Assembly: GCA_052426225.1 (NCBI GenBank)
Contig: JBNJNM010000014.1
Span: forward strand, 62,001 to 126,000
Origin: Zancudomyces culisetae HAW-14-8
Lineage: Eukaryota; Fungi; Kickxellomycota
DNA length: 64,000 nucleotides
Reading direction: 5' to 3'
Shown here: positions 12,778-64,000 of the stretch, one piece after another
How positions within the stretch are numbered: position 1 is the first letter of the stretch
How the letters are laid out: each line of letters opens with the position of its first letter
Notes under the pieces: model-generated
Told to the model about the DNA's origin: nothing
Database searches by the model: none
Seen by the model: the letters and a program-made list of their open reading frames with translations, nothing else
Made by a program: the position numbers and the translations under genes

Positions 12778-13233
12778 ATGGTCAATCTTTTGGTAACAAG
12801 TGCATTCTTACTAGCCTCGGGACTTGCAGCTGGTGCAACCATTCCAAGCATCCAGGTATCCAACACCAATGGATCTACTGAAAATCAAGCCAACCTCTAT
12901 AAACGGCACAGTGGAGGCTGGGGAGGAGGTAGAGGTGGGAGCGGGGGTAGAGGTGGGGGTGGACCCACCATGAATATTCAAATGTACATGACGAGCTACT
13001 ATAGAGATCAAATAAACTCAGTAGTAATACAACCAAATTGTTGTTACAATTTGCCAAATATTGATTCAAGCATTCTTGATGGCGGCAGTCAAGGTGCTGG
13101 TGTAATCACATTTTGCACTGGAAATAACTGCGGGGGGAATTGTGTAAGCAGTTCAAGACAAAACTGGTTATACCCTGGAAATATGCAGTATGACCTTGGA
13201 GGTCGGGCAAACTCAGTATACTGGTCTTTGTAG
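12778..13233 (+). CDS. Small secreted Cys-containing prepro-protein (signal, KR site, Gly linker, putative beta/gamma-crystallin-like domain), 151 aa
   Basis: CAACATG start at 12778; signal MVNLLVTSAFLLASGLAAGA; LYKR Kex2-type site; Gly-rich linker; C-terminal domain aligns with the 29052..29606 product. Confidence 0.85.
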   Translation: MVNLLVTSAFLLASGLAAGATIPSIQVSNTNGSTENQANLYKRHSGGWGGGRGGSGGRGGGGPTMNIQMYMTSYYRDQINSVVIQPNCCYNLPNIDSSILDGGSQGAGVITFCTGNNCGGNCVSSSRQNWLYPGNMQYDLGGRANSVYWSL

Positions 13234-14880
13234 TGAGAAAATATCACGTTTTCTTAAGATAATCGGTTTGATACTCACTTGTCCCAAACCGCTAGTTTTG
13301 ATGATTTTTACACAACATCGGATCTATAAACGGTTTTATATGGATATTTGATATTTTGTTGCTAACGTTTTCAAATATTTATATTAGCTAGTGATATTGT
13401 TGTTGGATTAAGATTCAATTTATTTTATTGTTAGAGTTTTCAAACGAGAAAATAAATAATATAAATTATAAAAACGTGTCAATATGAGCTTGCAACGATT
13501 GTTATAAATAATAGTCTGCAATAGTACATTGAGTAACTTTATACTTAGCACCTTTGTATGCATTTTTATATACATTGGTGTTATTCAGTATAAGACTAAT
13601 TTAAAAAAATATTAGCTCAGATTTTATTGTATCTAATGTGAAAAAACATCCACTTTGTTTGCAAATGTCAACTTATTTTAGTCTCATTTAAATGGTACCT
13701 AAGTAATGTTTGATTGATTCGATAAGTTCTATAGTAGAAAAGTTTGTGACAGAGCCGGTTTTCATTGCATAATATCTTTGATTTGAACACCATTTATTTG
13801 ATTTTAGGATATATTTGTACCTTGTAATTATAAATATCTAGGGGTAATATTCAAAGTTAGCTCTAATGCAGATGAAATCTGAGTGAAGTGAGTTGTACAA
13901 ACCTACTTTTACTAAACAGCGGATATAATGTACGGATTTAGTAATACGTGCACTAATCCAAATTTTTTAGAATACAAGCAAGATGATTAAAGGAGTAAAA
14001 AACTACTGAATTAAAGTAGCTAGCACAGAGTGAGATTTTAGATCATAACATGGAAATTTAGAAAAACCAAATAATCCATATTCGGCCCAAGTTCTATCAT
14101 TTTAAATGCCCTAAACAGCATTTACTATACCAAGCTACAAACATGGTACAATTTTAGATTGTTGAACTAGATCTTATCTTACTATTTCATCTCAATTGCG
14201 GTTGATATTTGGAGAACAGCAATATCGGAGTTTTGACTATCATTCTATGTGTCAAAAAACTAAAATAATCGACACATCTACACTGGTTTAGTATATTGTA
14301 CTTTTGATAGTACAATTCTTTGTTTTTGCACAAAATAATCGGCAATTTGTTTTTTGATTCAGCCAGCATACCGCTACTAGTATATTTTTATGTCAGTATT
14401 TTTTGAAATTTTGCTATTTTGGAAATAGTTCATGTACGTAAATCATGTTAGCCGAATTAGTGCAATTAAAATTATGGGCACAAATGAAAATTACGCAACT
14501 GTTCAAAGTACTTTATATTCTTTTCATGTTGTATCCAGAATATAATAATCTATAACTTAAAGCTGCTTTTACTTGGATCAAATACAGAAAAAACCATTTA
14601 AAGCATCTCAAGTCTAGTGTCGTGTGTATCCCATTGTAGATCGGGATTCAACAATTATAAATAAATATATTATTTACTACATAAAAAATCTACTAAAAAT
14701 ATAACAAAGTCAATCCAGAAATTACATTAATAACAGAAAAATCATAGAATAAAATACTATTAAAAAATATATTTTCAAGTAAATCAGTCTTTGAACATAA
14801 AACAATAAGAAATAAAAATAAGGATGTAAAAACAAAACCACAGGCAAGAATACAGTAAAACAAGAATGGAACATAGGTCA

Positions 14881-15069
14881 ATTAAATATAGCTATTATTA
14901 GTTTTATTGAAATAGTTATGTATAAACAAATGAAGACTCAATGAAGATTCCTAAGCTCTTTTAATAGTTTTAAGAAGAAAAGAACAAAAAGTTAATTAAA
15001 TAGTAATTAGGAAATAAAATCCAGGTTTATGATACATAACAAGTTTATTTGGAATAGTGCTACGGCTAG
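14881..15069 (+). repeat. Diverged ~190-bp direct repeat, copy 1 (upstream region of the 82-aa ORF)
   Basis: Shares blocks ATTAAATATAGCTATT, AGACTCA, GATTC..AGCTCTTT, AAGAAAAGAA and AAGTTTATTTGGAATAGTG.TACGGCTAG, in the same order, with 19685..19868. Confidence 0.85.
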
Positions 15070-15125
15070 TTAAAGAATATTTAGTGTTTAAATAAATACA
15101 AAGACTATAAAATCTCAAACTCAAC

Positions 15126-15374
15126 ATGTCAGGCTTCATGAATAAACTCAAAAAAGCATCGATCCAGACCGCTAAAACTCAGGGCCGATACTCATCTGAT
15201 AGTAATCATTTGGGAGCAACTTCTATAGAAGTCGATCCTGAAGAATTACGCGACTCCTTAGCGGATATCATGGAACATAAGTTTTTACAAATGAAGAACC
15301 CGAAAAAGAACGAGATGTCACCCAACCTCATTCGACGCTTGGCTAAATTAAAAAACAGTATATTTGTCATCTAA
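15126..15374 (+). CDS. Small orphan protein, 82 aa
   Basis: CAACATG context, ORF kept open in both arms, and a clear diverged paralogue at 19869..20093 (shared QGRYSS motif). Confidence 0.6.
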   Translation: MSGFMNKLKKASIQTAKTQGRYSSDSNHLGATSIEVDPEELRDSLADIMEHKFLQMKNPKKNEMSPNLIRRLAKLKNSIFVI

Positions 15375-17214
15375 TCAACAAGTTTTATTTCAAATGTTGG
15401 CTAATAATTATTCTTTTATTGAATGACTCCCCTAAACAAGTACGTAACTTAAACTGTAGAAGGTGGTAAACCTGAATTTAACAAACATGTGATCTTACAA
15501 GAATAGGAACCACTATCATGATTTTGTTTTTAGATACAAAAATTAAATTAACCTTTATACTTACTCTTATAATTTATAATACTATGAGCGGACCCATCTT
15601 CATATCTTGCAACGAGAGTTATGAATGATGATCCATGCAAGGTATTAAATGTTGAATCAATGGATTTAATCATTTTCTAAATATAAGACAGAGTTACAGT
15701 AAACCCTAGGCTAAATTACATCATACCCAGTGGGGAATAATCAAGCGCAGAGCTTTTAGGATCGTTACTGTAAATTCAATTTTGTATTCTCATTTGAATG
15801 CGAGGTAGTGACAGAATCGTTAAAAATTTGAAGAGTTTGGAAATGAGTTATAGCAAAAAGAATAATAATTTTATCAATGATAATAGTACAGATACTCACA
15901 CAACTTTGACTCATACTCACATTTGTCACCAGAAGCATTATACTACTTTATTTATGCTGCTACTTTTATTGACAATGATACGGTTTCTGTTCCCAGTTTT
16001 AAAATATTTGCTATTTCTTAGTGAACTTTTAGACAATTAATTTTGTCTAACTTTAAAATAATATTATTTTATTTGGGATGAGAATTATGAGCCTTGTCTA
16101 CAACGAATCCAAATGACTGTAACGGGAAAATTCAGTCTTATCCACAATAACAAACAAAAATAGCGGTGGGGAAAAACGATAAATGATATACAATCTTCCC
16201 TAAAAATTTTCTTCGATATCTAAGGCTTTGCGGCTGTTAAAAAATACCGCATAATAGTACTATTTTGGGAACACGTAAACTCGTGATTTCTATTGTTATT
16301 CAATTCAAAATTACATTTTAATCATTTTGTGAGATTCACCAGACCAAAATAATAGCAATTTTTATGGAATATGTGTGACTTCATTTTTGTTAGTTCGGGG
16401 GATATTTAATGTGAAGCAATCGACAATCATCAATTATTGTTAAATCTGGACCTGCACTATGTTGATTATGCAACTTGGTCCGTATTTTGAATAAATGTGT
16501 ATAACTACCATAATCAAAATACAAGTATAATCATGTGTAATTTTTCTCTAGTATAGAAAAAGTAACACATAAATAAAAGATTGAATCAAATGACATTAAA
16601 GTTCATTAAAAACACACTCGTATGGAACCCCTTATGGACAAAAAATTAAAAATTATACTCCTTAAATCTCAGTTCACTTATCATTAAACGTCCAAACTTG
16701 ATTATCATCAAGTTGTAAGCTTAGTTGTACAAATCAGTGATTGTCAACTCAGCTGTTGCTTTTGTGCATTTTTGAATCAGATAGAATATATTATGTGTGA
16801 TTAAGACATTAAAAAACAAATAGACGGTTTCGTACCAGATCTCAAGGTGGAAATTTAATCCCACTAAGCTGTTAACATAATACAGCATGATAATCTAGAG
16901 AAACAAACGTCTACATATATACAAGTAATACTATTGTGAGTGATACGTAACTTTTATTCTGATCATGAGGAAACTAAATAGAGTTATAGACACTGCATCT
17001 TTCTAGTTTTAAAACGGTTAATCATAAAGGATGTAGTACCTGAATGCGATATTTAAAAAAAAAGTATAAATACCCGCATCTCCAGCTCCTCGTTGATAGT
17101 AAAAACACCTACATCTGCTTTATAAAGCTAAAAAGAGTGTAACACAGTCTATTATTGTATTCTTAACCTTTGTACAAACAAATTTAACGAGTATAATACA
17201 AAAAACTAAAGAAA

Positions 17215-17973
17215 ATGACAGCGCTTAAGTTGAAAATCGGAAGGCTGGTAATGACCACACTGCTTTACACTGCTTGTGCAAACAGTGTGCATCCAATGGG
17301 TATGGTGAGCGAGGCTCATAACTCTGGTATGCCACTCAAAAAACGTGGATATTCCAGATATAACGACTACAGTGATTTTGATTACAGAAACTATGATTAC
17401 GGCTTTCAGATGCGGCCATCATATGCCGAAAATACAAACTATGGAAACTGGGACAGAGCGGAATATGACATGTATACACCAGTGAGATCACCACTAGCCC
17501 ACATAAAATTTGGTGCCACAACAATTGGTGGTGTAGGTGTAGATGGATACAGATATGGTCACAGAGATCATGGAGGAGATAGTGATAGAGATAGTTACAG
17601 AGACAATTACAGAGATATTGAAAGGTATTATAGAGGAGACGGTTACAGAGATAATGGAAGAGATTATTACAGAGATAATGAAAGAGATGATTACAGAGAT
17701 CATGGAAGAGATAGCTACAGAGACTATGGAAGAGGTGATTACAGGGATGATGGAGAAGATGGTTACAGAGATCATGGAAGAGGTGATTACAGGGATGATC
17801 GAAGGAGCAGTTATAGGGATAATAGAAGAGATGAATACAGAGACAATAGAAGAGATGAATACAGAGACAATAGAAGAGATGAATACAGAGATGATCGAAG
17901 AGTAGGTGGCGACTATCATTTTGCAATGGGCAGACCAAATTACCCAAATCCATTGATGCGTTCGAATGACTAA
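17215..17973 (+). CDS. Secreted Tyr/Arg/Asp/Gly-rich repeat protein, 252 aa
   Basis: AAAATG start, TATAAATA 150 bp upstream, signal-like N-terminus, KKR site, then ~8-aa repeats YRD(H/N/D)(G/R)R(D/G)(D/E) encoded by 24-bp units. Confidence 0.8.
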   Translation: MTALKLKIGRLVMTTLLYTACANSVHPMGMVSEAHNSGMPLKKRGYSRYNDYSDFDYRNYDYGFQMRPSYAENTNYGNWDRAEYDMYTPVRSPLAHIKFGATTIGGVGVDGYRYGHRDHGGDSDRDSYRDNYRDIERYYRGDGYRDNGRDYYRDNERDDYRDHGRDSYRDYGRGDYRDDGEDGYRDHGRGDYRDDRRSSYRDNRRDEYRDNRRDEYRDNRRDEYRDDRRVGGDYHFAMGRPNYPNPLMRSND

Positions 17974-18567
17974 GCCATACATAGATTATTCTTGGTGCTG
18001 TACCAACATATAAAATGGTGTTATTTGTACACGTTTCATTTTGCGCAAACAATCAAAAAATAATTGATTCCGATAATCAGCTTTCGTACTCCTGATTTTT
18101 CTGGTTTCTCAATACCCCATCTGCTACATTTTCTCATTCATCGATTGGGAGTACGTATATTCTCCAAAACCACCATACACTAAAGCTATGTGTCATATCA
18201 TGTACTTCAGCTATTTCAAACTCGAAACTCTCTGAATGTTTTAACAATACACAATGCTGTTCTAACCCATCATGAAACACTCACAATCTGTATTTTGTAA
18301 ATAAGAATATTTTATTTTATTTCTGATTTTTGTTTTGAATTGGATCCGTTTTACGAGCAAATGTTGCTAACACCCTTGTGTTTTTGATCTCTCGACGTTA
18401 GGACTTTTTTCAAAGTATACCGTTTACTAGCGTCGTTTTGTGTAAGGATTAAATATATTTTGTACTATTTGTTTTGTTGAATTGTTTACTAGGTTTAAAC
18501 CATCAATCACCATTGACGACCACTGGCACTCCAAGACAGTTTAATGCAGTCTAAAGTTAACTCAAAT

Positions 18568-18852
18568 TCAAGGCAGGGGATCATTCTGTTGATCTGAGGA
18601 GGTAGTAGATGTGAATCCATCTATTTTCACAACATCTGGGATTTCAATTCAAGAATTTTAGTTGGCCCGGTTATTGTAAATGTGCTTAAGTCTATTTTGA
18701 TGACAGGTACTTTAAAATTTGAGATTATAGTACCAGAAACATCCATATCATCAGCTGTAAAGCCTGGAATTGTTTTAGTTTGATCTGCGGCTTTTCTGCG
18801 GAATAGCCTTGCTGCTTCTCTTTTGTGGGGCTTTTCAACTTGCGAATTTCAT
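18568..18852 (-). pseudogene. Probable relic of a secreted-protein gene (arm B copy 58193..58478 on +)
   Basis: AAAAATG AAA TTC GCA AGT TGA with TATAAAA ~130 bp upstream. It is followed in another frame by 93 open codons in arm B (HKREAARLFRRKAANQTKTIPGFT...KIPDVVKIDGFT), frameshifted by 1 bp in arm A. Confidence 0.35.
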
Positions 18853-19684
18853 TTTTTCCTTTATCTTTAGCCGATAATAAAGAGTTTATGAATGCAAAGG
18901 ATAAATATCTGTTAAATTCGTTTATCTTTATTATTGTTTTTCTGAACTATTACTAAAATGGGAATATGGTGTGGGTTTTTATAAATGTGTATTTTTCTTG
19001 AGTATGTTTTTTTTTCATCTCATTAAATTCTCTTATATAGAGCTTTTGGAACTATAACTCACTATACATAACTTATTTACATTACTTTCAGGTGGGCTTT
19101 TATTGTTTTTTGCTATTTGATACTCGGCATCAGTAACCCAAATCGATATGTTACCTCTTGGTATAATTTTTTTGATTCTTTTTAAAGAACTATCAACTAT
19201 ATTTCTCAGCTATTTTTTTAATGCTATAGCAGTTTAATCGTAATTAAATAGACACTTTCGGTTTTATAAAGAGCTTTTTTTCAAGCTTTTTACTTATTTT
19301 GCATATATCTACACATAACTGCTTAACTGAGTACTCACACTAAAACAATGGTTTGTTTTGATTTATTTTGTCGTGTGTACCTGGTTGTTGTGCGGAACAT
19401 AAAGTAATTAATTAATAATTTATTACTATAATATCAATCTAGAGCTCAATTTGAACACAACATTAATAACAGATTCAATTATAAAGTTTTATCAAAAATT
19501 ATATCATAAAAACTAGAATAATGAGTAATAAAATAAAAAAGATAAGATTTATTAATTAGTATATTAATTGTTTAATATAAAAACTGAATTGAAATGGACT
19601 AAAGGAAATGAACTTTGGAAGAAGGAATGAAATTTCAGAGTCGCAAGTTAAGAATATAGTAAAACTATAATACCACATGCATTG

Positions 19685-19868
19685 ATTAAATATAGCTATT
19701 GTTAGATTGTTTAAATAGAATTATTAAAAATTAAGGCAGACTCATAAAAGGATTCTTTAGCTCTTTAAATAGCATTAATAAGAAAAGAAATAAGATAGAT
19801 AAAGAATAATTGTAAACAAAGTTTAACTTTGAAATGTTTAAGTTTATTTGGAATAGTGATACGGCTAG
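19685..19868 (+). repeat. Diverged ~190-bp direct repeat, copy 2 (orphaned upstream region of the inverted paralogue)
   Basis: Collinear similarity to 14881..15069, ending at TACGGCTAG. Confidence 0.85.
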
Positions 19869-20093
19869 CTAATTTTCGGACGCGACCAGACGGTTCACGC
19901 TCCTTAGTCGGTTTCCCGTAGTTAGAAACTCTTGCTGAACTATATCTCCTAGTTAAGCCAATGGGTCATGTGACGGCTCAAGTTCAATATCTATCGAAGA
20001 CACACCTGAACAGTCACTTTTAGAAGAATAACGACCCTGACCCTTAAACCTTTGGATAATAGCTGAGCGGAGTTGATTAATAAGACCTGGCAT
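19869..20093 (-). pseudogene. Inverted, disrupted paralogue of the 82-aa orphan
   Basis: ATG at 20093 gives MPGLINQLRSAIIQRFKGQGRYSSKSDCSGVSSIDIELEPSHDPLA*LGDIVQQEFL, matching MSGFMNKLKKASIQTAKTQGRYSSDSNHLGATSIEVDPEELRDSLADIMEHKFL. Confidence 0.8.
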
Positions 20094-20768
20094 TGTGATT
20101 TTAGTAATTCAAAACTGTCCTTAGCACTATTTTTTAACTTAATTATTAAATAAAAATTATTTCTAACAAACTCCTTGTTCAATCTTATTTATTTTCTAGT
20201 CTTTTTGTATATTCCAAAACTACAAAAAGAGTAGCTGAGACTTCTAATGATATCTCTTCTGCCTTTAAATATGTTAATTACTACTGTTAAAACTATTGTA
20301 AAACTTGTCTAATTAACATTTATTATACCCGTTATCGTTTCATACTCGACCTTATCGTCATACTCATATTCTGTCGTATTTTCCATAATCGATTAAATTC
20401 TTTTACTGTTCTTATTTCAATTTGTAATTTTTCTCTTTAATTTTTGATCTGAATATTTCCTTCAATACGTGATCGAATATTTGAACCGTACTTTTGATTG
20501 TTAATATACTAAATAAAATAAATTTTTTTTGAATATCATAGTTTCCCAAGTAAATGCATTAATTGGGTCTTTTACCCAAAGCACACGACAGAGAAAGCTT
20601 GGAATTGAATCCTCAAAGGGAAATAACGAAGAATTGAACGCTAGTTCAGCGAGAAAGGGTGGTCGCGTTAAGTAGTGTTCAATGAGTAAAGCCAAGTTTT
20701 TAGTCCGGAAAGAGTTAATAAACTAAAGTGATAAATGAAGGATACTATGTTCAACTTTTAATAGATAT

Positions 20769-21630
20769 ATGAAAAAATATGAACAAGCGAAACATAATCG
20801 CGAGCTAAAAAAGCAAGGGGTTCCAGTTAGTTCTGTTTCACAGCTTAGAAAACATATGAGAGCAGCCACAAATACAGAAAAGGTACACAACGTAACTGAA
20901 ATGATAAAGAAAATCCGAAAGAAAAAGGTAGTCAAAACTGAAGACGGATTATTAGAGATAGGTTTGAGTATTTCCAGTTTGCAAGAGTTGTGTGTTAGAG
21001 TAATCAGAAAACATATAAAAGTTTTCACTTCGTTTGGAGATATCTCCTCAGAGGCCAATAACAAAGCGTGTAGGATTATTAATGAATATAGGCCTTTGGA
21101 TAAAAACACACTTCAGCTCTTTTTAACACCAACGTTGGATCAAAAAACAGAACTCGTGTTGTATGAATGTCCAAATATAAATATGAATAATTATTGCAAT
21201 TTTTTTGTTCTGTTGATGGAAAACCAATCAAGCGGGTTTTCACTAATTCATTTGGATTTGGGTGGAGTTTACGATCTTGGTGACAATGCTTTAATTTTCA
21301 TTCTCAGACATTCTGGCTCTACTCTACAGCACTTGAGTCTACACTCATAAGACCAATTCTGATCAAAAAATGACCGTCTTGCCTTTTCTGGTACTATTAT
21401 TTTCAATATATATAAGGATAATAATAGCAATAAAGATAAAGATAGCACAGGTACAAACACCTCTCAATTTACAACGCATTCGACAGTTACTCTTTCGACA
21501 TGCAAAACCCTACATACACTAAAAATTTAATTTTTAAGGTTTATTGATGACCCTATCATCTCCACTCTTCTCTTTAATCATCCCGGCTTATCTACGATAT
21601 ATGTGAATGGGAAACCCGAAGTTCACCTCA
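20769..21630 (+). pseudogene. RAD7: RAD7/Rhp7-like leucine-rich-repeat NER gene remnant
   Basis: SLQELCVRVIRKHI..FTSFGDIS....KACRII...R.L...TLQLFL.P....ELVLYEC is the Rad7 family pattern. Most central LRRs are missing and there is a stop at 21350. Further LRR-like remnants with stops follow (LHTLKI*FLRFIDDPIISTLL). Remnants probably extend upstream of 20769. Confidence 0.7.
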
Positions 21631-23072
21631 CCAGCTTCCGCGTGATCATAATTCTAAGTTATTGGCTGCGAATCTTATGCACTTTGGTTAAGATTTATTA
21701 TTCTTCGCATTAGCTCGGCCATATGTTTATTCGCGCTATACCATATTTGGTGAATTTGTAAAACTTTTCTTTTGTTCATTTAATGTACGTACTACTTATA
21801 TCAAAATCTATAAGCACTATTTTGTTCTCTGGAGAAACTTCCGTAAAAACCTCGCAAACTTATCTACTGTGGGAATACCAGTATTTATGGATATCTCGGT
21901 GGGTTCAAATTAATAACCAGTTGTCACGGACTTTAAACACCGGAAGAAATGTCAAAATTATTTTTTGTATTAGACTGGTAGATTATGTAATTATTTATAA
22001 GCCATGTAAAAAATTCCCCACTATTGAAAAAAGACCATTTAGTTGGGGTTTTTTTTTGAGTCAAGTCAAATGACTTATCTAGCGGATTATTGGATCAACG
22101 AGCCTTGCATCAAATGTGTTTTAATATTAACACCGATTTATCAGTCAGGGTCTACACATAGCAATGGATTTAGAATTAAAAAAGACCACCTACTCTGTTT
22201 CAAATATATTTGTTAATATTGCAAATAGTTTATTACAACGACACTTAGTAAAGCGTTGCGGACAATAAAATAATGTGCAGATTCTATATTGTGTAACAAA
22301 TATTATATATAGCCCCATCCAAAAGCTCCAAATATGTTTAAAATACCAAATATTAGCAATGTACTATTAATAAATGTAAAAACGAGGCTGTACCCAAGTG
22401 TAATTGAAAATAGTCTTGAATAAAATAAGCAGTAGTTGTCATGTTTACAAATAATTGTGGCTATTTAGTTTAACGACTGATAGCAAAATCTGTTTACCAA
22501 AAGACCAGATTGTGCCACCAACATTAAGGATTGACAGGAAAAGTGAATAGGACTTTGTTCCTGGTTAGATATCGCAAATTTTTCCAGGTAGATGTGCGTA
22601 AATATCAATTACTTTAAACTGTTGTATAATATTCATTTTTGAAGTTATATCAATATAATGCTAATTGAAACCAGAACAGCCAAATGTGAACATTAAATTG
22701 GATAAATCTTAATCCATCTATATACACGCAAAAAGAGTTGCAGTACAGCCTCCCACTTTACTATCTTGATACCTCTTTTTATATTTCGAATCAACTTAAG
22801 GGATAATGTATCTGTGTATTCACTATTATAATAGGTTTTTTTATTGTCCAGTTTATTAGCAAAATCTATCGAACTTAACACCCCCTTCCCTCCCCCCAAA
22901 AAATATTAAATTTTAATAGCTGTTTTTACTATAAATCTAAAAATAGAAAACATGAAGGATGTCGGAAGTAGAAATTAATATTTATGAATATTGACATGTT
23001 GTATCATAATATAATGAGCATAAAGCGGTTTTAATGTCAAAAATATAGATCAAAATAAGATGTGACAAAATG

Positions 23073-23080
23073 TATATAAG
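23073..23080 (+). promoter_or_regulatory. Probable TATA box of the 493-aa secreted gene
   Basis: TATATAAG 122 bp upstream of ATG 23195. Confidence 0.45.
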
Positions 23081-23194
23081 TCAACACTATCTACCAAGTT
23101 CCACATTTATAATTACAACTATACTTTATAGTCATCAGTACACATATCTACAAACAAGAGCATTTATACACTTCAAAAAAGGCATTCGAGAAAA

Positions 23195-24676
23195 ATGAGA
23201 CCAAACGCATATGCAGCATTATTTCCGTTGGTTTTGGCTAACTTCATTTTACCAATAGTAGGAGCACCCACTTCAATTGACACTGGGAGTTTTCACTGTT
23301 CTGGGTTTATCAGTAAAATTGACATTGTACAAGGGTCTGGAAATAGTCCAGTTATCAGCTATGGTTGGGATAGAGCTATTGATATTTCTTGCCCATCACA
23401 AGATTACATTGTTTCATTTGATGCTGATCAAACTTCTGATATATATTTTGCAATCAGTGCGGAAAAAGCTTTGAGTACTAGTAGAGGTGTGATTGAAGGT
23501 GTATTTGGTGTAAACAATGGATCATGGTATATTGGGACTTCAAAATATACATTGCTGATGGGCATCAATTCAGGAGCAGCAAATACACAAAAATTATATG
23601 TTCAGGTTAATAGCTCAGGTATCAGCATTGGATTTGTAGGAAACAATACACCAATCTTGACATTGCCAACACGTGATTACAGTGTCAGCACATTTATAAA
23701 CTCATCAAGTACATGGCTTGCGTTTGGAGCCGAGAAGGATTCAACAAAGATCCAAAACATTGAATATAAATGTAATGATTCTAACTGTAAACATTCATCT
23801 TCTACTACATCAGCCAAACCAACCACATCACTTTGCCCAACCACATCAACTAAACCAACTAAACCAACTAAACCAACTAAACCAACTAAACCAACTAAAT
23901 CAACTACTTCAACCACTTCAACCACCTCAACCACTTCAATCAAGCCAACTACTTCAACTACTTCAACTACTTCAACCACCTCAACCACTTCAATCAAGCC
24001 AACTACTTCAACTACTTCAATCAAGCCAACTACTTCAACCACCTCAATCAAGCCAACCACCTCAACTACTTCAATCAAGCCAACCACCTCAACCACCTCA
24101 ATCAAGCCAACCACCTCAACTACTTCAACAAAACCAACCACTTCAACCACCTCAACTACTTCAACCACTTCAACCAAACCAACAACTTCAACCTCTTCAA
24201 TCTGTGACTCCACTTCTGTGGGTCCTGACATTTGTTTATACTCCACTAACAAGAACAAAGATTATGACTTCAAGCAAGCCCTTACTATTCCGTGTGATAC
24301 AAACGACTTTGAGTTCACTGCTAGTGTCTCAGCCACCTCTGACTTCTTTGTTGCTCTCATGGACAGCAGCGGGTATTATAGCTCTAACGGTGTATTAGAA
24401 GCACAATTTGGTTTGTCATCTGGTACCAGTTCCATCAGAAAAGGTAAATACGCCTTAGTCAAGCGCAACAGCGTTCATACAAGAGCCAATTTACAAGACA
24501 TCAAGATTGTTAGCAAAAATTCTCAACTCCAAATCTTCATCAACAGTTTGCTCAAAGTTACACATAGCTTATCTACCTTTAACATGACATCATTGGCTAT
24601 GGCGCCATTCAAAGGCACAGCTTCTGTTTTCAAACCCACTTTCTTTTGCGAGAGAAATTCCCACTGCAAATACTAA
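23195..24676 (+). CDS. Secreted protein with two homologous beta-rich domains separated by a Ser/Thr/Pro mucin-like linker, 493 aa
   Basis: Signal peptide [24 protein letters not shown]. Internal homology: AIDISCPSQDY...TSDIYFAI...GVIEGVFG...KYTL vs [11 protein letters not shown]...TSDFFVAL...GVLEAQFG...KYAL. TKP/TTS/IKP repeats between them. Confidence 0.88.
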   Translation: MRPNAYAALFPLVLANFILPIVGAPTSIDTGSFHCSGFISKIDIVQGSGNSPVISYGWDRAIDISCPSQDYIVSFDADQTSDIYFAISAEKALSTSRGVIEGVFGVNNGSWYIGTSKYTLLMGINSGAANTQKLYVQVNSSGISIGFVGNNTPILTLPTRDYSVSTFINSSSTWLAFGAEKDSTKIQNIEYKCNDSNCKHSSSTTSAKPTTSLCPTTSTKPTKPTKPTKPTKPTKSTTSTTSTTSTTSIKPTTSTTSTTSTTSTTSIKPTTSTTSIKPTTSTTSIKPTTSTTSIKPTTSTTSIKPTTSTTSTKPTTSTTSTTSTTSTKPTTSTSSICDSTSVGPDICLYSTNKNKDYDFKQALTIPCDTNDFEFTASVSATSDFFVALMDSSGYYSSNGVLEAQFGLSSGTSSIRKGKYALVKRNSVHTRANLQDIKIVSKNSQLQIFINSLLKVTHSLSTFNMTSLAMAPFKGTASVFKPTFFCERNSHCKY

Positions 24677-26291
24677 AATATATTTTTAAATCTTTTTATT
24701 ATTTGGTTAGCTTTTAAAAAGGGAATAATAATAAATTTTAGTAAACAAATCAATTAACTTTCTAATAAAGCATATTTGTTTAGTGGTATTTAAAGAAATA
24801 CACCAATCTTTAGAGCAACAAATAATTCATGGTTATGAGAAATGCCGAAATATAGCTGTCAGTGGTATACTACAGTAACGATGCATTCAGCATTTCAAAT
24901 CCAAATCTCAAAACCATTAAAATAAATGAGACTTCATGAGATGGACAATTGAATCTATCTCTTAAATAAGTGTCACAAAATCTGATACTCTACCAGGAAA
25001 AAAGAAATTGCCAAACATTTTATGTTTAGTCAAGCTGCGAACAATGAGATTGTTAGATAGAGTCTGTCAGGCGAGGGTTATTATCTGTATCAATCTTGAG
25101 TATAAAGTATCACTGAAACAACGCCCGGTGGGTAAGGAGTTGCTAGAGAGACAGAGGAGAATTGGTTAGGTTGATATTACATAGAATTGTTTTGTTGTAA
25201 TTTTATTGGGTGCTTATTTATTGGGTCTTATGAACAAAAAAAACACCAAGAAATAATAATTGGGCAAAGTTTACTAGATTGCAGTGGATATGTCAAAAAT
25301 GGCAAAAATGTAATTTCGGGGTTTATAAATCTAAATAGCTTTTTCTTTTAACTAAAACGATTTTCGAACATGGTGAGTTTCGCAGAAAAATCATGGGTAA
25401 ACTCCTGGAGGCAAGAGTTAAACCTTAAACTTTCTGGAATTATTCGGGATACAAACGCCACTTGTGCTAGAGCGGTAGTTTCCACATGCAGGTTTCTCAA
25501 CAAAGCCTTTTTCACTTTGTTACCTAGCTATGAAAGGCAGTAAGTGCAGCCCCACTCCACCTGAACCAATATTTTTCAGGTACCGGGTATCCCAGGGAGT
25601 CGGAATGAAGGTGAGACAAACTTGGTTTAAATGATTGTTTTTTTTACAAACTTTTTGGTATCTAGACAAATATTGCTTGATCAGAAAAGCAATATTTTGT
25701 AAATATACAATAAAATATATAATTGCATTGTGGTTTACAAGCCCCGAAACTCGTATGTAAGCGAATTTACAGTAGCTGCATTGTACTTGTAGTGCTAGAT
25801 CAATTTTTTTCTTTAAATAATGACAATATTTGTTCTCAGTTTTATTCTTTTTTCTGGAATGCTTGTTATCACTTTATTTTACTCATTAACTTTTACAATA
25901 TTCTCACCTTCTACACGAGTTATGCCTCAATTGTGATTTGTCAAATATGTATGTATTCTGCCCCTAGTACGAACAGGTATTTTACAGTTATGTTTAGAAA
26001 TATTAAAAACGATGGCTAGTCGTTATTCAGAAAAATCAAAACGTTCTACATTTTATTACCGCAATAACTCGCCAAGATGGTATTGTAGATTATAAAAAAT
26101 CCCAACCTGAAATCATTCAAACTCAACCCCTTTACAACAACAGTTTAATCCAAATAGAAATAGCTGTAACCATACTTTGTATCTTGATATTCTACAATGC
26201 AGAAAAAAAACTATATAAGAGCTATGATTTTCTTTCACAGTTTATCATACACATCTAACCCTCGCATTAAAAACTACTCGAAAAAACCAAA

Positions 26292-26771
26292 ACTGAACTA
26301 TTAACCCCTTCCCTAGCTGTATTAACACTTTGAGCTGGAACCACCATTGCAAGCCGTAGCGGTGGCCATGAAGACCGCCACGGAGACGGTTGCAAAGGAT
26401 ATAAATACTGAAAAAACGAAAGCTGGTATGATTATTCAGCCGCGTACACAGTGGCAGTATCAGTTGCAGTTTGTGTCGTCAGAGCTGTTGGCACTACTTA
26501 TGAAGTCGGAGCTGGAGCCGTTGCAACAGAATATGCTAGTGGAGCTGTTGGTACTGCATACAAAGCTAGGACCATTGGTAGAGTAGGGGTTGTTGGTGTA
26601 GAAACATATCCACCATACTATTTATCGTTCAATGACTTCTACTTTGATAGATTTGGTAGAAGACACCGAGTATAGCACAAAGGAGAACATCACAAAGATG
26701 ATGGAAGCGGTGGAAGTTGTGGAAGCGGAGGAAGTTATGGTGGTAGCATTTACCTTATCAATGTTGTTTAA
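26292..26771 (+). pseudogene. Pseudogene of a secreted Gly/Ala/Tyr/His-rich protein
   Basis: One frame reads ELLTPSLAVLTL*AGTTIASRSGGHEDRHGDGCKGYKY*KNESWYDY...GAGAVATEYASGAVGTAY...RRHRV*HKGEHHKDDGSGGSCGSGGSYGG. It has a signal-like start without ATG, three in-frame stops and TATATAAG at 26212. Confidence 0.65.
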
Positions 26772-29051
26772 ACTACAATTAATGGTTTTTGCTTTTTTCC
26801 AATCATACGATTGCTTTTTCTTCAAATGTACGAATAAATTCGCACTAATATTAAATATAAGCACTACGAGTTAAAGTGTTATGTATAGGTATTTCGTTTA
26901 GTTGGTTTTTCTACAGCATTTTGTCAACTGTTATAAACTGCACTTCCATCTAAAAAAAATATAGTATTTTTTTTGCTCTGGCCGTTTTAAATGTATTAAT
27001 CTTGAATGTGGTGAGCAAAGTATACAATTTACTGTTCAAAACTATCAACCCGTATCTGTATTACGTAACGAGTAGCCATTACTATCAAATAGCGAGAGTA
27101 AGATATGAGAGTATTATTGATGTGAAAATGTCTATAGACGTATTTGATATTAGTTATTAATCCACTTTTTTCAACCTGTTCCTAAAATAGTTGACTGAAT
27201 CCGTTAATCCATTAATTCAGATATTCATATATATGAGTTGAGTCGTAATAAACATAATTTTGAATAAGGCAAATACTACAATTTTTGTGTAGTTGTCATA
27301 TCTTTTGCATAATGGGTGTGGTGCAGGTTGTTGTAAACTATCTCAATTGTATAGGTGTGATTCTTGTGTATGCTTTATTTTATGAACCTAAAAAAGTATG
27401 TTTATATTGATGTTCTCACGAGCTGATTTATATATTTAAACGTTTCTATCGAGCAGGTGCACTTGACCTCGAAAAAGTTAGATGAATTAACTAAATACAG
27501 AAACCTGGAAAAGTTAGTAGCAGAAAATCTCGATAGTTCAGTTCGAACAGCTACGCATCAATCTCAAAATAACCATATTGGCGTCAAATCAAGAGTATAC
27601 TGTTGTGTGTTGGAGTATAGATACTAGTACTGTTTTTACTTGGTCAAGTTAACTATTTACTGATCAATGTTGCCCAAGTAAATATTTTGGATACTAAAAT
27701 ATGTTTAGCTGGGTAAAGTTAAAACAGTATTGTTATGCAAACACTCAAATACAATTATGTCGTATCTAATTACTGTTCAACCTAGTTCAAAAAATGAAAA
27801 AAAAAACAACAGAAAACATGAGACATCGGTTTGTATACAGTTTTTGAATCTGTCTATCTAGTTTTACCAACCTAGTATTGCCATAGTAAGATGGTTAAAA
27901 AAACGAGTAATCAGTTAAAAATGTTATTAGAAACATAAAGTATTACTCAAATAATTGTATCTGGGTAGGCGAAATTATTGTTAATATTTAATATTGAAAT
28001 AAAAATAAAACTTTCATTAATACTTAAGTTTGCTTGATGCATCCAAACAACTGATACATTCAAAGCTCTTTTATACAGGGTATTGACATCAACATTTCTA
28101 ACATTGTAAAACGAGATCGTGTGATTGTAATTATTGTACGCATTGTCGATCTGGTTAGAATTTTGGACACAAAATTCTATCTTGTATACGGTTTCTCGCA
28201 CAGATCAAGTTAAATCCAAAATCCTTATTTTTTTGTTGCCTGTATTAATCTGGAATTGGAACTTGAATATCAAATATTCTACATGTAAACTCGGTTAGTC
28301 GTAATTAATAAATTGAAACTATTAAATAGTCGGTGATAGGTTCATACAGTGATGCGAGCCCATCAAAACTTATGTTATTTGTATCTGCCTACAAATTTAA
28401 CAAATCAAGTAAAAACCAATAACACCCTTAACACCAACATAGTAATTTACCCTGATTCTCCACCCCACCCCACCCCTTCAAAATGCTCAAAGAATAACTT
28501 CTTGTCTTTGCTAAATCCATCTACTGTGCTTCTTCTAACCATTATCTCTTATCAAGGAGTGGCACCTCAGAAGCTGGGTATCTATGAGTACCAGCTCAAC
28601 AGCGGTCAACTACTTACCCGTATGGTCAAGACTCGATACTAATTCTCATCTAATTTTGACCTGTTTATTAAAGATGTGAGCACAAGTATTCTTGCTGGAT
28701 GTGTTTACTCCTTGTGTGGATAAATTCGGTCCATCCAAGGCTTAACCATCAAACCTTGTTTCTATGATATTTACACTAACTGTGGAACTGAATCTATCAC
28801 AGGTCTATTCTAAATATTATCTAAAAAGTATCAGCTCAAACAGTTTTTTCTAGCTATTTAATATTGAATAGATAGTATATTCGCTTTGCTTTACTTTGTG
28901 CTTTTATTAAATATATTGTGGTCACAATTGGTTGTTAAAATGATTTTATTATAAAATTGCCTCTTCATCTTTTTTAAAAGAATGAAAGTTGAAATAAAAA
29001 TCTATGCAGTTAATGTGCTATTTAATAGGATGAAAATCTAAAACCTAGAAA

Positions 29052-29606
29052 TTAGGTTCTCTTAACCTTGAGCCAAGCGTATGAAACTGCATTTCCTCCA
29101 AGAACATCAGCTACATTGGCGATGGTTTTGGACGATGATCTACGAACCACTTGGCATTTTCCAGTACAATCCTTTGCTGCACAGACCACAATAACACCCT
29201 TTCCTGGCTTGGTCAATCCACTCTTCTTTCCGAGCTTGATTGATGCAAATTCATCGGTGTTGTAGCACTTTCCGCGTCTGACGCTGCGCTTGCTGATTTT
29301 TTGACCAAAGTTGGCAGTCTTGTACAATCTAACACTTGTTCTCTTGGCCTTGCGTCCACCACTGACACGACCACCCATATCATTGAATTCACAACCAGAC
29401 ATATCGTTATTGTACTCATAATCAGCTAGGTAGTTGTCGTATTCAGAATCAGCTAGGTCGTTGTTGTATTCGGAATCGGCAAGATCGTTGTTGTATTCGG
29501 AATCTGCAAGACCATTGTTGTATTCCTTTTGAGTACTGTTGAGGTTCAATGCACTGGTCAAGGCTGAACCGAAAAGCAAGGCGCTGACTAAAGTTGGCTT
29601 GAACAT
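29052..29606 (-). CDS. Secreted prepro-protein: acidic 9-aa repeats, RKAKR site, cationic 4-Cys domain, 184 aa
   Basis: Signal MFKPTLVSALLFGSALTSA; LADSEYNND repeats; basic processing site; mature domain homologous to the 12778..13233 product; TATATAAG on the minus strand at 29731..29738. Confidence 0.9.
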   Translation of the reverse strand: MFKPTLVSALLFGSALTSALNLNSTQKEYNNGLADSEYNNDLADSEYNNDLADSEYDNYLADYEYNNDMSGCEFNDMGGRVSGGRKAKRTSVRLYKTANFGQKISKRSVRRGKCYNTDEFASIKLGKKSGLTKPGKGVIVVCAAKDCTGKCQVVRRSSSKTIANVADVLGGNAVSYAWLKVKRT

Positions 29607-31201
29607 TTTGACTATTTGTGGTTTCTGTTGGTTTCTGTTGGTTTGGTTTGTTTTGTTTTTGATCTATTTGCTTTATTTCCTGTCGAAATGATGTTGTGTT
29701 TTATTTAAATTATGTGGGAAAAACCCTACTCTTATATACTTTTGAGGGAGTTGAGCTAGTTATACTATTCACATTGTTAATACACTAATACACAAGATAA
29801 TGTGAATACCACTCAATAGCCTGTATAAGCTGTAATATGCTCGCAAATTATTTGTTGAACAGGCTCTTGTATATCAGTATTGTGATCTAGAATAGTATCA
29901 ATAACACATAGGTATCTTGGAATACACCTATTTCTTGCAATTATATTGTATTCTCAAATATATTCATAAATCTAGCTTATTTGAATAAACCCGCCTTTAA
30001 ATTCTAGCAATTGTACATCTTTGTTGCTATGTGGGCAATTAAAAGTCACACTACTCTAGACTTGGCTCTTATTTGAAGCTGGTTTAGTTGAATAGATCGG
30101 CGCTTATCAGTTTTGTTTCTTGGAGAGACATCAGCTGAATTATCACTGGTAGTAAATAAAAAATAAAAAATAGAGAAACAATAACAGTATTTATAGTGTA
30201 AGTAGTGGTTGTAGAAGATAATAATTGTAATTCCATTTGCCAGAGTTGTATATTCATTTTCTTGTAACTATTATATTGGAACAGCGAATTTGTAGATCAA
30301 GGAATATATTAATTTTGAAATCGACAACAGTCTCGCCAATTAATGCTATTTTTTTAAAAAAAAAGCTACTGGTTTATAATACGATCAACTAAAAGAACCA
30401 AGAACACTTTTGATAATGAGAGGGATCTAGTATTTTGGTGATCAAATTCGTTAAACTTGATTGCTGCCTTAGTTTCAAAAGTTTGGGTATATCGTTGAAA
30501 CTTAATAACTATTTTAAGGAAAAAAAAGTCAAAATGGAGATTAGAGTAGGTCGAGATTTGGGCACGTTTCTAAAATACAGCTGATAAGTATGGAGTCCTT
30601 AGGTATACAGAGTGAAGTTGGTTAGATAGGTATTATTTTCACTTTTACTGCTATTTAGTTGAAAAGGGTACATTATGAAATAGCATCATTTTCATACTAA
30701 ATTTACGTGTAGCCTTGAGTTAAACATTGAAATTGGTCAGGGGGAGTGTATAATTATTTAAAATCTTCATATAGCTTTTCTCAAAATGACTTTGGTAATG
30801 AGTGTATCTAGCTAGTTTCGTCTTGACGTTGCAATGTATTTTTATTCAATGGGTAAAAAAAAGTGTTTATATTGCGTCTTCAGTGGTTTTATCTCGGTAA
30901 ATTTATGATCACATTAAGCGTAATTTCCCGGTTTATATATTTACATACCAATGCTTGAACTTTTATAATATCTTCATAAACACATATTAGGTTAAAGCGT
31001 ATGTTCAGAACAATGGCAAGTGAAATGAGTCGATTTTTGAATATCAAGGTGGTACCTGTGGTGACACGCTGTCTTGTTTAGGGTATACTTTTGTATCTAG
31101 TCTGCAAGTGCTGGTATATAAGTCAAATTATATGCATCAAAGTTATCCCATGAGGTCTAAGAAATTGATGTTATTTTCTGTATATTTACCCACTTTTCTG
31201 C

Positions 31202-31245
31202 TTTTCCGGTTAATAATTTTCCGGTTAATATTTTTCCGGTTAATA
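31202..31245 (+). repeat. 15-bp tandem motif TTTTCCGGTTAATAW x3 upstream of MGM101
   Basis: Three near-perfect copies plus two degenerate TTTCGGT copies to ~31275, about 200 bp before the ATG. Confidence 0.8.
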
Positions 31246-31403
31246 TTTTATTTCGGTCAATATTATATTTCGGTTTTGGTTATTGTAAAAAGTTCAGCCA
31301 AGAAAATATAAAAAAAATTGATTATGAAATCTCTTGCAAATAAATAATAACTGTATATATAACAATCACAACCCATTTTGTGGAAATACTGAAAAAGAAA
31401 AGA

Positions 31404-32674
31404 ATGTTTGGACCAGTTAGAGTAAGTTTGGGATATAATAAAGATTTATCGTTGCAAATTCTTAGTGCTTGTGTATAATATAGTTTAGTGTGGCGAAAAG
31501 CGGAGCAAGGTTTGCTAATTTAAATTTCGGAGCCGTAGCCAAGATTCCAGCAGGTGTCTCCAGGCTAGCGTATTCTACAGGTACCTCTACAACCTCATCA
31601 AGTTCTACTGTGGTAAAAGCTCAGGATAAGACAAAATCTGCCAAAACTGGTAAGTAAATACCACAACTTTACTTTTTCCTGATTTGTAAAAGGATTCCAA
31701 AGTTGGAATGGTTAAATTTTAACCATTTACAATGTGTTTCCTTTTCTTTAAACAAAAAAGGTTGGAAGACTAGTAGAAACAAACACCTGATGTTACCACC
31801 ACACTCTCTTACATACACGAATAAAATATAGACAAGGTAGAAAATGTAGAAAAGGGCGAATTCAATTTTAAGCCTTCAGAAGTAAGCTCATTGAAAAACT
31901 CTGCTGGAACTACGGTCAAGGAAGACTGGTCAGAGGACTACCATGGTGTGTCTACACAGTCCTTTGACCAAAGAGTCATTGATATACTGATGGCACCGTT
32001 AGAGAACCAAGATGTTGAAATCAAACCAGGTATGTGTGTTTTTATTTATTTACAATATATGGTTTATTTTTAGTCAAACAATTTACTCTTGTCTGATTGC
32101 TAATTCAAACTCGCTTCACCTCACCTCACTTCTCACACTTTATCCCTCTGTTGAAAATAATACATTTATAGATGGTCTATTGTACTTGCCAGAAATAAAA
32201 TACAGAAGGGTTTTGAACAGAGCATTTGGACCAGGAGGTAAGAAACAAAAGAAATAATTAAAATCTGCATATTGACAAGTATTTAAACGACTGAAACGAG
32301 AAGATGTCTTTGATTTTTTTTTTGTAGGATGGGGATTGATTCCACGCGGACCATACTCAACAAACGACAGGGTCTTATCGCGCGAGTACGCGTTGTTGTG
32401 CCACGGCCGGTTTATTTCACAGGCGCGTGGAGAGCAGGATTATTTTGAGGAGTCGGGGATTCCTACAGCTACTGAGGGGGTTAAATCTAATGCACTGATG
32501 CGGTGCTGCAAGGATTTGGGCATTGCATCGGAGTTGTGGGATCCAGGATTTATCCAAAAGTTTAAGAGTGAGCATTGTGTTGCGGAGTGGGTTACCCATG
32601 TAACCAAGGGCCAAAAGAAGTTGGTTTGGAGAAGAAAGGATCGTAGTTTTGAGTATCCATGGGTAAAGAAATAG
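31404..32674 (+). CDS. MGM101: Mitochondrial genome maintenance protein Mgm101; join(31404..31421,31484..31649,31832..32029,32172..32237,32328..32674)
   Basis: Spliced product contains DWSEDYHG...[36 protein letters not shown]...[29 protein letters not shown]. It has an Arg/Ser/Ala-rich presequence and four in-frame GT-AG introns. Confidence 0.95.
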
Positions 32675-36737: not shown

Positions 36738-36768
<31 letters not shown>

Positions 36769-38117: not shown

Positions 38118-38198
38118 TTTTATTTCTTTATTTATTCAATTATTTATTTATTAATTATATAAATATAAATATAAATAAAATAAAATATAAATTAAAAA

Positions 38199-40970: not shown

Positions 40971-41011
<41 letters not shown>

Positions 41012-41076
41012 CTCCTCCTATTTTTCCTCTATTTTTCTTCTTCCTCACCTTTTCCCCCACCCCAAATATCCTATCT

Positions 41077-47413: not shown

Positions 47414-47995
47414 ATGTTCAAGCCAACTTTAGTCAGCGCCTTGCTTTTCGGTTCAGCCTTGACTAGTGCATTGAACCTCAACAGTACTCAAAAGGAATAC
47501 AACAATGGTCTTGCAGATTCCGAATACAACAACGATCTTGCTAATGCTGAATACAACAACGATCTTGCAGATTCCGAATACAACAACGACCTAGCTGATT
47601 CTGAGTACGACAACTACCTAGCTGATTATGAGTACAATAACGATATGTCTGGTTGTGAATTCAATGATATGCGTGGTCGTGTCAGTGGTGGACGCAAGGC
47701 CAAGAGAACAAGTGTTAGATTGTACAAGACTGCTAACTTTGGCCAAAAAATCAGCAAGCGCAGCGTCAGACGCGGAAAGTGCTACAACACCGATGAATTT
47801 GCATCAATCAAGCTCGGAAAGAAGAGTGGATTGACCAAGCCAGGAAAGGGTGTTATTGTGGTCTGTGCAGCAAAGGATTGTACTGGAAAATGCCAAGTGG
47901 TCCGTAGATCATCATCCAAGACCATTGCCAATGTAGCTGATGTTCTTGGAGGAAACGCAGTTTCATTTGCCTGGCTCAAGGTCAAGAGAACCTAA
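47414..47995 (+). CDS. Arm B copy of the acidic-repeat/cationic-domain prepro-protein, 193 aa
   Basis: Near-identical to 29052..29606, with one extra 9-aa repeat (LANAEYNND), G>R and Y>F changes; TATATAAG at 47282. Confidence 0.9.
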   Translation: MFKPTLVSALLFGSALTSALNLNSTQKEYNNGLADSEYNNDLANAEYNNDLADSEYNNDLADSEYDNYLADYEYNNDMSGCEFNDMRGRVSGGRKAKRTSVRLYKTANFGQKISKRSVRRGKCYNTDEFASIKLGKKSGLTKPGKGVIVVCAAKDCTGKCQVVRRSSSKTIANVADVLGGNAVSFAWLKVKRT

Positions 47996-63808: not shown

Positions 63809-64000
63809 CTACAAAGACCAGTATACTGAGTTTGCCCGACCTCCAAGGTCATACTGCATATTTCCAGGGTATAACCAGTTTTGTCTTGAACTGCTTACAC
63901 AATTCCCCCCGCAGTTATTTCCAGTGCAAAATGTGATTACACCAGCACCTTGACTGCCGCCATCAAGAACGCTTGAATCAATATTTGGCAAATTGTAACA
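63809..64000 (-). CDS. 3' part of arm B copy of the 151-aa secreted Cys protein (5' end outside window)
   Basis: Encodes CYNLPNIDSSVLDGG...GGRANSVYWSL, one I>V change versus 12778..13233. Confidence 0.85.
   Translation of the reverse strand, partial: CYNLPNIDSSVLDGGSQGAGVITFCTGNNCGGNCVSSSRQNWLYPGNMQYDLGGRANSVYWSL

Follow-up and report, generated by a model that had tools for sequence, protein, structure and literature searches.

The closest described counterparts of the proteins discussed here are the beta/gamma-crystallins (those of the lens, of Ciona and of Geodia, Protein S, spherulin 3a and the AIM1 domains), all built on a domain of about 85-90 amino acids (aa) with two Greek keys, and a set of likewise small, secreted, disulfide-bonded and mostly basic single-domain proteins, that is, the killer toxin HM-1/WmKT of Williopsis (Hansenula) mrakii (1wkt), the Streptomyces SKLP and the plant MiAMP1. 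In this work we analyzed a stretch of 64,000 nucleotides (nt), hereinafter the window, of the genome of Zancudomyces culisetae, a fungus of the mosquito gut belonging to the Harpellales (contig C14:62001-126000, G000:C14; the genome consists of 27.1 Mb in 25 contigs, with about 33% G+C), which harbors two diverged genes, named A and B, and a copy of each of them, and we focused our attention on the protein family to which they belong. Taken jointly, sequence features and predicted models make it likely that this is a large family of secreted proteins sharing the crystallin fold.

The folded hairpin of crystallins is characterized by residues with a 1-6-8 spacing and by a distal Ser, and the canonical Ca2+ motif of the microbial crystallins corresponds to N/D-N/D-x-x-S/T-S before the conserved Ser. 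WmKT possesses ten Cys residues engaged in five disulfides and is made as a precursor which is cut at a Lys-Arg site. IPSE/alpha-1 of Schistosoma mansoni (4el6), a secreted single crystallin-fold domain from an animal symbiont/parasite, dimerizes, binds immunoglobulin E and localizes to the nucleus; an action on the host has been proposed for it, as well as for the gamma-crystallin-like effectors that plant-pathogenic fungi possess. As regards the killer toxins, the inhibition of beta-1,3-glucan synthase has been cited for HM-1 (PMC2801674), and their link to the crystallins is traced back in the same paper to the work of Antuch et al. in 1996. Secreted gamma-crystallin-like families are known in plant-pathogenic ascomycetes, where they have been called widespread and were recognized through structure prediction and not through sequence (PMC9447291, PMC13525658). 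Cluster 14 of Magnaporthe oryzae, Ecp4/7/29/30 of Cladosporium fulvum and cluster G.03 of Zymoseptoria are, similarly to the proteins described below, sequence-divergent, lineage-specific, small, secreted and crystallin-like.

The genes of interest and their predicted domains in the window are the following:

12778..13233, forward strand: gene A, coding for a 151-aa prepro-protein (open reading frame, ORF; match to the family profile with E 2e-31)
12964..13230, forward strand: A domain, 89 aa, a predicted single beta/gamma-crystallin domain (limits from the profile; AlphaFold2, AF2)
29052..29606, reverse strand: gene B, coding for a 184-aa prepro-protein (ORF, sequence features, AF2)
29055..29339, reverse strand: mature domain of B, 95 aa after KR, predicted beta/gamma-crystallin with four Cys (AF2, VIA-align)
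47414..47995, forward strand: gene B', a copy of B coding for 193 aa with one extra propeptide repeat unit (from the inverted repeat)
63809..64000, reverse strand: gene A', a copy of A that crosses the window edge (complete at C14:125812-126264; 97% identical)

The product of gene A exhibits a signal-like N-terminus (about aa 1-20) and a pro-segment that ends with LYKR (aa 40-43), after which a Gly/Arg-rich linker (aa 44-62) leads to the predicted crystallin-fold domain (aa 63-151); this domain contains five Cys, i.e., the four family Cys and an extra one adjoining C27. The product of gene B shows a signal-like N-terminus, an acidic propeptide embedding four or five acidic 9-aa repeats that correspond to 27-nt repeats at the DNA level, the RKAKR site (aa 85-89) and a cationic mature domain (aa 90-184), whose C-terminus is a basic KVKRT tail. 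A preliminary description of this DNA, made from its letters, had proposed such a prepro organization, with a signal peptide, a propeptide and a dibasic site in both proteins, whose N-termini are indeed hydrophobic, and had assigned to them a near neutral and a very basic charge, respectively, in agreement with the isoelectric points (pI) computed for the mature forms after KR (7.8 for A; 10.4, with a net charge of +17, for B). It had also reported a C-terminal domain shared by the two ORFs, and this finds full support: A and B are 30% identical over 101 aa (E 2e-9, BLASTP), the shared part being represented by the C-terminal 90 aa or so, and the two gap-free blocks, Y-x-T-x2-[YF]-x3-I-x9-CYN-x5-S and G-x-GVI-x2-C-x4-C-x-G-x-C-x4-R-x7-N-x4-LGG-x-A-x-S-x2-W, match the translations residue for residue. 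The idea of four copies doubled by an inverted repeat holds for A, B and B', which lie within the window, with A' crossing its edge; the family as a whole is far larger, since the genome harbors at least 150 copies, with an excess close to contig ends.

The fold was analyzed by modeling and by two structure searches. Using the A domain as the query of a family alignment (A1, see below), AF2 returned an all-beta model with a mean predicted local distance difference test (pLDDT) of 97 and a predicted template modeling score (pTM) of 0.86. When this model was compared to the Protein Data Bank (PDB) with Foldseek, the top 50 rows were all beta/gamma-crystallins, with template modeling (TM) scores of 0.55-0.67 and modest E-values of about 0.01. 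In VIA-align, a Foldseek-independent structure search over 48,161 chains, the top 21 matches all belonged to the crystallin superfamily (Z 8.3-5.9), with 75-82 of the 89 residues aligned. Among these are the crystallins of Ciona and Geodia, Protein S, spherulin 3a, MiAMP1, WmKT and IPSE/alpha-1, the beta/gamma-crystallins representing the best structural matches (Z 8.3-7.0 for A). The Z scores of A and B, respectively, were 7.0 and 5.3 with MiAMP1, 5.9 and 4.8 with WmKT, 5.1 and 3.2 with SKLP, and 7.4 and 6.4 with IPSE/alpha-1, which shares no sequence relation with this family. In the full-length model of B, residues 1-84 are of low confidence and the domain is formed by blocks with pLDDT 90-96 and one loop at 77-79; its top 20 matches in VIA-align also fell entirely within the crystallin superfamily (Z 7.4-5.3).

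Both models were matched to identical chains over identical ranges, as in the case of 1bd7_B (residues 87-171/172; Z 8.3 with A, 7.4 with B), and this indirectly indicates that one would superpose on the other. In both models the strands form a two-sheet sandwich with two Greek keys, their order fits that of the crystallins and the whole domain is covered. The models support the idea that the mature part consists of one beta/gamma-crystallin domain, about 89 aa long, with two Greek keys; our confidence in the fold relies on the uniformity of the hit lists, the coverage of the full domain and the sequence signature, and not on the Z scores alone. The crystallin/killer-toxin fold put forward in the preliminary description, together with the structural check it had suggested for both domains, is hence borne out at the level of confident models, all the top structural matches belonging to the crystallin superfamily and WmKT, MiAMP1 and SKLP being listed among the matches.

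The signature of the fold was then sought at the sequence level. From 100 loci fetched from the genome we obtained 97 unique ATG-to-stop family ORFs, which were reduced to 54 domains sharing less than 80% identity (alignment A1). The signature columns were counted over the 97 Z. culisetae domains and 17 domains from other Harpellales:

Column 8, motif 1 position 1, aromatic: 93/97 Z. culisetae, 17/17 others
Column 13, motif 1 position 6, aromatic: 68/97, 16/17
Column 15, motif 1 position 8, Gly: 19/97, 9/17
Column 35, motif 1 distal Ser: 83/97, 17/17
Column 51, motif 2 position 1, C/F/Y: 97/97, 16/17
Column 56, motif 2 position 6, Cys: 96/97, 17/17
Column 58, motif 2 position 8, Gly: 92/97, 16/17
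Column 84, motif 2 distal Ser: 95/97, 17/17

The two Greek-key signatures can be written as [FY]-x4-[FY]-x-G...S (motif 1) and [C/F/Y]-x4-C-x-G...S (motif 2). On these sequence grounds the crystallin hairpin signature is recognizable but modified, its spacing being exact in both motifs, each of which has its conserved Ser (Ser35 and Ser84). Invariant or nearly invariant positions in alignment A1 are C27, G46, C51, C56, G58, C60, S84 and W87, and even copies with an identity as low as 20-30% have four Cys, two Gly, two Ser and one Trp in common. Unlike the beta/gamma-crystallins, this family essentially always carries a Cys at position 6 of motif 2 and usually another one at position 1, keeps the motif-1 Gly poorly, does not have the Ca2+ motif and is apparently secreted with a pro-segment. 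The absence of the Ca2+ motif is evident at positions -5/-4 from each Ser, occupied by T/L/I and P in columns 30-31 and by G and G in columns 79-80.

The Cys residues follow a regular pattern. Practically every one of the 114 domains has C27 and C56; C51 and C60 occur together in 94 domains and are jointly missing in 18, with one exception. In 17 of the 18 domains devoid of C51 the residue is F or Y, that is, the canonical aromatic. Since the presence and absence of the Cys covary, the disulfides C27-C56 and C51-C60 can be predicted, and the Cys at position 1 of motif 2, along with its covarying partner, would stand in for the hallmark aromatic residue. Four Cys are found in 39 of the 54 non-redundant domains, so that the family, mostly with four, differs from WmKT with its ten.

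The size of the family was evaluated through a six-frame search of the genome with the domain profile, which scored 150 matches among 197 candidates; the counts based on these 150 represent, therefore, a lower bound. The genome matches amounted to 146 with A, 149 with B and at least 150 with the domain profile, to which A and B themselves match at E 1e-25 to 1e-31, well beyond what chance would give. About 145 of the 150 matches listed are free of internal stops and about five contain them, nearly all frames being 130-200 aa long. A gut fungus of the Harpellales probably has few gene families larger than this one. One member is much longer than the others (313 aa; L055:884-1822, reverse strand, in the C6:1594889 region), in that it carries a 222-aa extension N-terminal to the domain, the latter having the C27-C56 pair as its only Cys pair; a twin of this gene is located on contig C10.

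The distribution of the family in the genome is far from uniform. Among the matches listed, 92 out of 150 (61%) are located within 100 kb of a contig end, a portion representing 10% of the sequence (binomial p 3e-52). A TTAGGG array occupies the last 1.4 kb of contig C6 (C6:2921265-2922669), and this pattern counts about 2,400 matches per strand genome-wide vs. 8 and 2 for the control; true telomeres are therefore present at some contig ends at least. The telomere repeat is absent from the first 300 bases of contig C14. In the region C8:24560-72583, three members repeat with an exact period of 17,064 bp (24560/41624/58688, 33579/50643 and 38216/55280), which is a tandem segmental duplication close to a contig end. 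The B-type genes are scattered over at least ten loci, many of which are internal to contigs (L021:660-3087, L022-L031), and the dispersed unit consists of the gene with its flanks, about 2.3 kb in length and 80-94% identical between loci. A transposon as the carrier of this 2.3-kb unit is not supported, because the unit is devoid of terminal inverted repeats.

The paralogues are under purifying selection and are real genes. Indeed, the median ratio between nonsynonymous and synonymous substitution rates (dN/dS), computed over 169 pairs with at least 60% identity, was 0.23 in the case of the domain and 0.25 in that of the prepro part, values that serve as a description and not as a test, the pairs not being mutually independent. 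Pervasive positive selection was not seen in these pairwise comparisons, the dN/dS of the domain exceeding 1 in none of the 169 pairs. The domains of B and B' differ by one nonsynonymous and ten synonymous changes (dN 0.004, dS 0.166); between A and A' there are five nonsynonymous and no synonymous changes, a difference that is not significant and that cannot be interpreted because the substitutions are too few.

As to the relatives of the family, the Pfam scans returned no significant family for A, B, B', the 54 family domains and 15 Harpellales relatives; in particular, A, B, the 54 domains and the 15 relatives did not match Crystall, Crystall_2 or Crystall_3. A profile search of the PDB sequences gave only chance-level matches, the best one (E 0.03) being an antibody heavy chain, and all the proteins retrieved by a word-indexed search using the full-length profile belonged to Z. 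culisetae. An exhaustive profile search over 1.84 billion representatives retrieved 52 proteins at E <=1e-3. Those strong matches that were looked up belong to Z. culisetae, with the addition of one protein of Smittium mucronatum (E 1e-39), and Smittium culicis and Furculomyces boomerangus account for all the small proteins with E between 1e-7 and 1e-3. The family profile finds relatives in Smittium and Furculomyces, and, as far as sequence comparison can detect them, the relatives are limited to these other Harpellales. When the Z. culisetae profile was aligned with that of the Smittium/Furculomyces relatives by hhalign, the probability was 98.5% (E 1.7e-15). In most of these relatives the domain directly follows the signal-like N-terminus and its signature is closer to the canonical one. 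The S. mucronatum protein (P0006, OLY84601.1, 296 aa) is composed of three tandem domains (30-110, 118-199 and 207-288), and the other Harpellales relatives seen have one domain each.

In a maximum likelihood tree, a single branch (ultrafast bootstrap, UFBoot, 97; Shimodaira-Hasegawa-like approximate likelihood ratio test, SH-aLRT, 95) sets the 54 domains of Z. culisetae apart from the other 17, and A and B fall in separate, well-supported clades; the tree has to be regarded as a rough one, because it is based on 89 columns and on midpoint rooting. This topology is consistent with an expansion that would have occurred inside the Zancudomyces lineage.

Among the weaker matches, a 615-aa metagenomic protein (P0045, from JGI/IMG; E 2e-4) carries Crystall_3, Inhibitor_I36 and Crystall of Pfam in the matched regions, and its repeats share the equivalents of C27 and C56 with the Harpellales family. 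On the basis of this pair, P0045 and the Harpellales family may perhaps belong to a wider subclass of disulfide-bearing crystallins. The hhalign comparison of the family with P0045 alone is weak (probability 9.7%), and for this reason the sequence bridge to the Pfam crystallins is merely suggestive. Yeast-kill-tox (PF09207) was matched below threshold by one out of 15 relatives, from S. culicis (E 0.037, 15 bits vs. a cut-off of 23), and by none of the window proteins or of the 54 family domains. The look-alikes retrieved with a protein language model include clusters with Crystall and Inhibitor_I36 (scores 0.81-0.86), to be taken as leads only. The long multi-stretch matches of the exhaustive profile search (P0033, P0044, P0050, P0053 and others), in which either unrelated domains or no domains at all were recognized, were discarded as compositional/Cys-rich noise.

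The idea that these proteins are secreted is suggested by a strongly hydrophobic N-terminal window in 44 of the 54 non-redundant members (81%). A dibasic pair is located between -8 and +3 from the start of the domain in 27 of the 54 (50%), often within runs such as RRRR. The genome possesses one gene combining Peptidase_S8 (4e-46) and P_proprotein (3e-19), i.e., a kexin, at C15:1061245-1061517 (746-aa ORF). Since dibasic sites are present and one kexin is encoded by the genome, the processing of A, B and about half of the family by kexin appears plausible. The median pI of the domain is 9.15, being higher than 8 in 80% of the members and lower than 7 in 11%, and the mean net charge is +6.3. 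The hypothesis that an acidic propeptide offsets a basic domain throughout the family was not supported (Spearman -0.15, p 0.27).

On the whole, we propose the following scenario. A and B are diverged representatives of a large, Harpellales-restricted family of small and probably secreted proteins, which would enter the secretory pathway by means of an N-terminal signal peptide; in many members, the single kexin would remove a variable pro-segment at a dibasic site, and the proteins would be released into the hindgut of the mosquito larva as compact modules held together by C27-C56 and C51-C60. Their most likely role might be the binding of extracellular targets, and the amplification near chromosome ends might have provided both dosage and diversity.

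Several considerations weigh against this scenario. The evidence base is wholly in silico, and the signal peptide was judged by hydropathy alone. Half of the non-redundant members do not have a dibasic pair adjoining the domain, the KR of A sits 19 residues upstream of it, and most of the Smittium/Furculomyces relatives are devoid of a propeptide; for these reasons kexin processing is not family-wide. The domains of the acidic fraction (11%) include that of A itself (pI 4.6). As to the fold, Z scores of 7-8 are middling according to the calibration of VIA-align, and the similarity to WmKT is weaker than that to the lens and microbial crystallins. Moreover, the known killer toxins of crystallin fold are single genes with five disulfides, and about 150 copies near chromosome ends look more like an effector or contingency family.

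A remaining question concerns what these proteins might bind. One possibility, which we advance tentatively, is an antimicrobial, killer-toxin-like action on competing gut microbes, and it is favored by the cationic character of the members and by their prepro design; between such an action and an action on the host, the former is slightly favored. With respect to WmKT, the strong basicity is matched by B and by 80% of the members and not by A, and a single gene is replaced by about 150 genomic copies. If it were so, a commensal would possess an arsenal of about 150 cationic, crystallin-fold, killer-toxin-like proteins with which it would fight or shape the microbiota of the larval gut and possibly co-resident pathogens; this broader idea is rather doubtful, and, if true, it would make these proteins the eukaryotic counterpart of a bacteriocin repertoire, their Greek-key scaffold having a disulfide in place of the hairpin aromatic.

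According to another hypothesis, the proteins might be effectors acting on the host, that is, on the epithelium or cuticle of the larval hindgut, on immunity or on attachment, which is possible and which we likewise entertain with caution. Copy number, diversity and location are the features that favor it, large, diverse and lineage-specific families near contig ends being typical of host-interaction genes, and the present family has all of these traits; the structure searches retrieved IPSE/alpha-1, and the very basic B type ends with the KVKRT tail. Besides, crystallin-like folds are enriched among the predicted effectors of ascomycete pathogens (PMC9447291, PMC13525658). Compared to those ascomycete families, the one described here belongs to an insect-gut commensal of the Zoopagomycota, is larger by about an order of magnitude, is enriched near contig ends, and has its own Cys pattern and, in many cases, dibasic pro-segments, differences that come from the description of those families. 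However, the Harpellales are commensals living on a cuticle-lined hindgut, reportedly with fewer secreted genes and fewer genes resembling those of pathogen-host interactions (PHI-like) than pathogens (PMC5954228), and the pairwise dN/dS of about 0.23 gives no sign of pervasive diversifying selection.

The members of the family might otherwise be structural or stress proteins of the wall, spore or holdfast of the fungus itself, in a way similar to the Ca2+-binding microbial crystallins. This explanation, which we consider unlikely, could call upon Protein S of Myxococcus, spherulin 3a of Physarum and the Abundant Perithecial Protein of Neurospora as models, all of them among the matches of the A domain (1nps and 1prs, Z about 7; 1hdf, Z 7.5; 5z6e, Z 7.1), upon a copy number that could allow bulk production and upon the 313-aa member with its long extension (222 aa). 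It is at odds with the absence of the canonical Ca2+ motif and with the finding that most members are short single domains in which no anchor signal was noted. Even less probable is that they are protease inhibitors of the SMPI/Inhibitor_I36 type, shielding the fungus from gut proteases. The larval gut is indeed a protease-rich habitat, P0045 carries Inhibitor_I36 and some language-model look-alikes carry PF03995 (scores 0.82-0.86, leads only); nevertheless, PF03995 matches no family member in the Pfam scans, the 50 best structural matches of A or B do not include SMPI, and no conserved reactive-site loop was identified. Lastly, the view that we are dealing with decaying, non-functional ORFs carried in repeated DNA near chromosome ends, in favor of which one might quote the many copies in duplicated blocks, the about five of 150 listed matches with internal stops and the non-significant excess of nonsynonymous changes between A and A' (five vs. 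none), is highly improbable and is largely refuted by the selection and conservation data, given that about 145 of the 150 listed matches are intact, the key Cys, Gly, Ser and Trp are kept in copies 20-30% identical, the median dN/dS is 0.23 with one nonsynonymous vs. ten synonymous changes between B and B', and homologues are retained in three other species.

Secreted crystallin-like fungal proteins and the link between killer toxins and crystallins are already known; what is new is a sequence family with a modified signature, its ecological setting and its unusual copy number. No mention of such a family in Harpellales was found in the literature searched. The public proteins identical or nearly identical to members bear the name "hypothetical protein AX774_g... 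[Zancudomyces culisetae]"; because public gene models of this kind exist for some members, the family has to be considered uncharacterized and not, as had been stated at first, unannotated. The present analysis assigns a fold and a testable hypothesis to a family so far recorded as scattered "hypothetical proteins", adds an early-diverging commensal of the insect gut to the organisms with secreted crystallin-like proteins, next to plant-pathogenic ascomycetes and the yeasts that make killer toxins, and offers a clean natural variant of the crystallin signature in motif 2. If the proteins were antimicrobial or host-active, they would be relevant to the gut ecology of mosquitoes and as compact, disulfide-stabilized binding scaffolds; if they were merely structural, this would be a routine family annotation.

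Concerning the organization of the locus, the inverted repeat that doubles A and B was recovered by blastn, run on the window plus 10 kb beyond it, as one alignment of 25,890 nt with 97.7% identity. Its arms, for which no strand is assigned, are separated by a spacer of 15.8 kb (30628-46403):

4811-30627, left arm: 25.9 kb (blastn), carrying A and B
46404-72228 (window numbering), right arm: carrying B' and A' and extending 8.2 kb past the window edge

The arms also double an ankyrin-repeat gene (7436-10954) and several further secreted-looking ORFs. Other secreted-looking genes surround the family members, at 17215-17973, 23195-24676 and 42561-43688; they code for a Tyr-Arg-Asp repeat protein, a 493-aa protein with a long Thr/Ser/Pro-rich repeat and, within the spacer, a trypsin-domain protein, respectively. 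As a whole, the region of the window looks like a secretome island.

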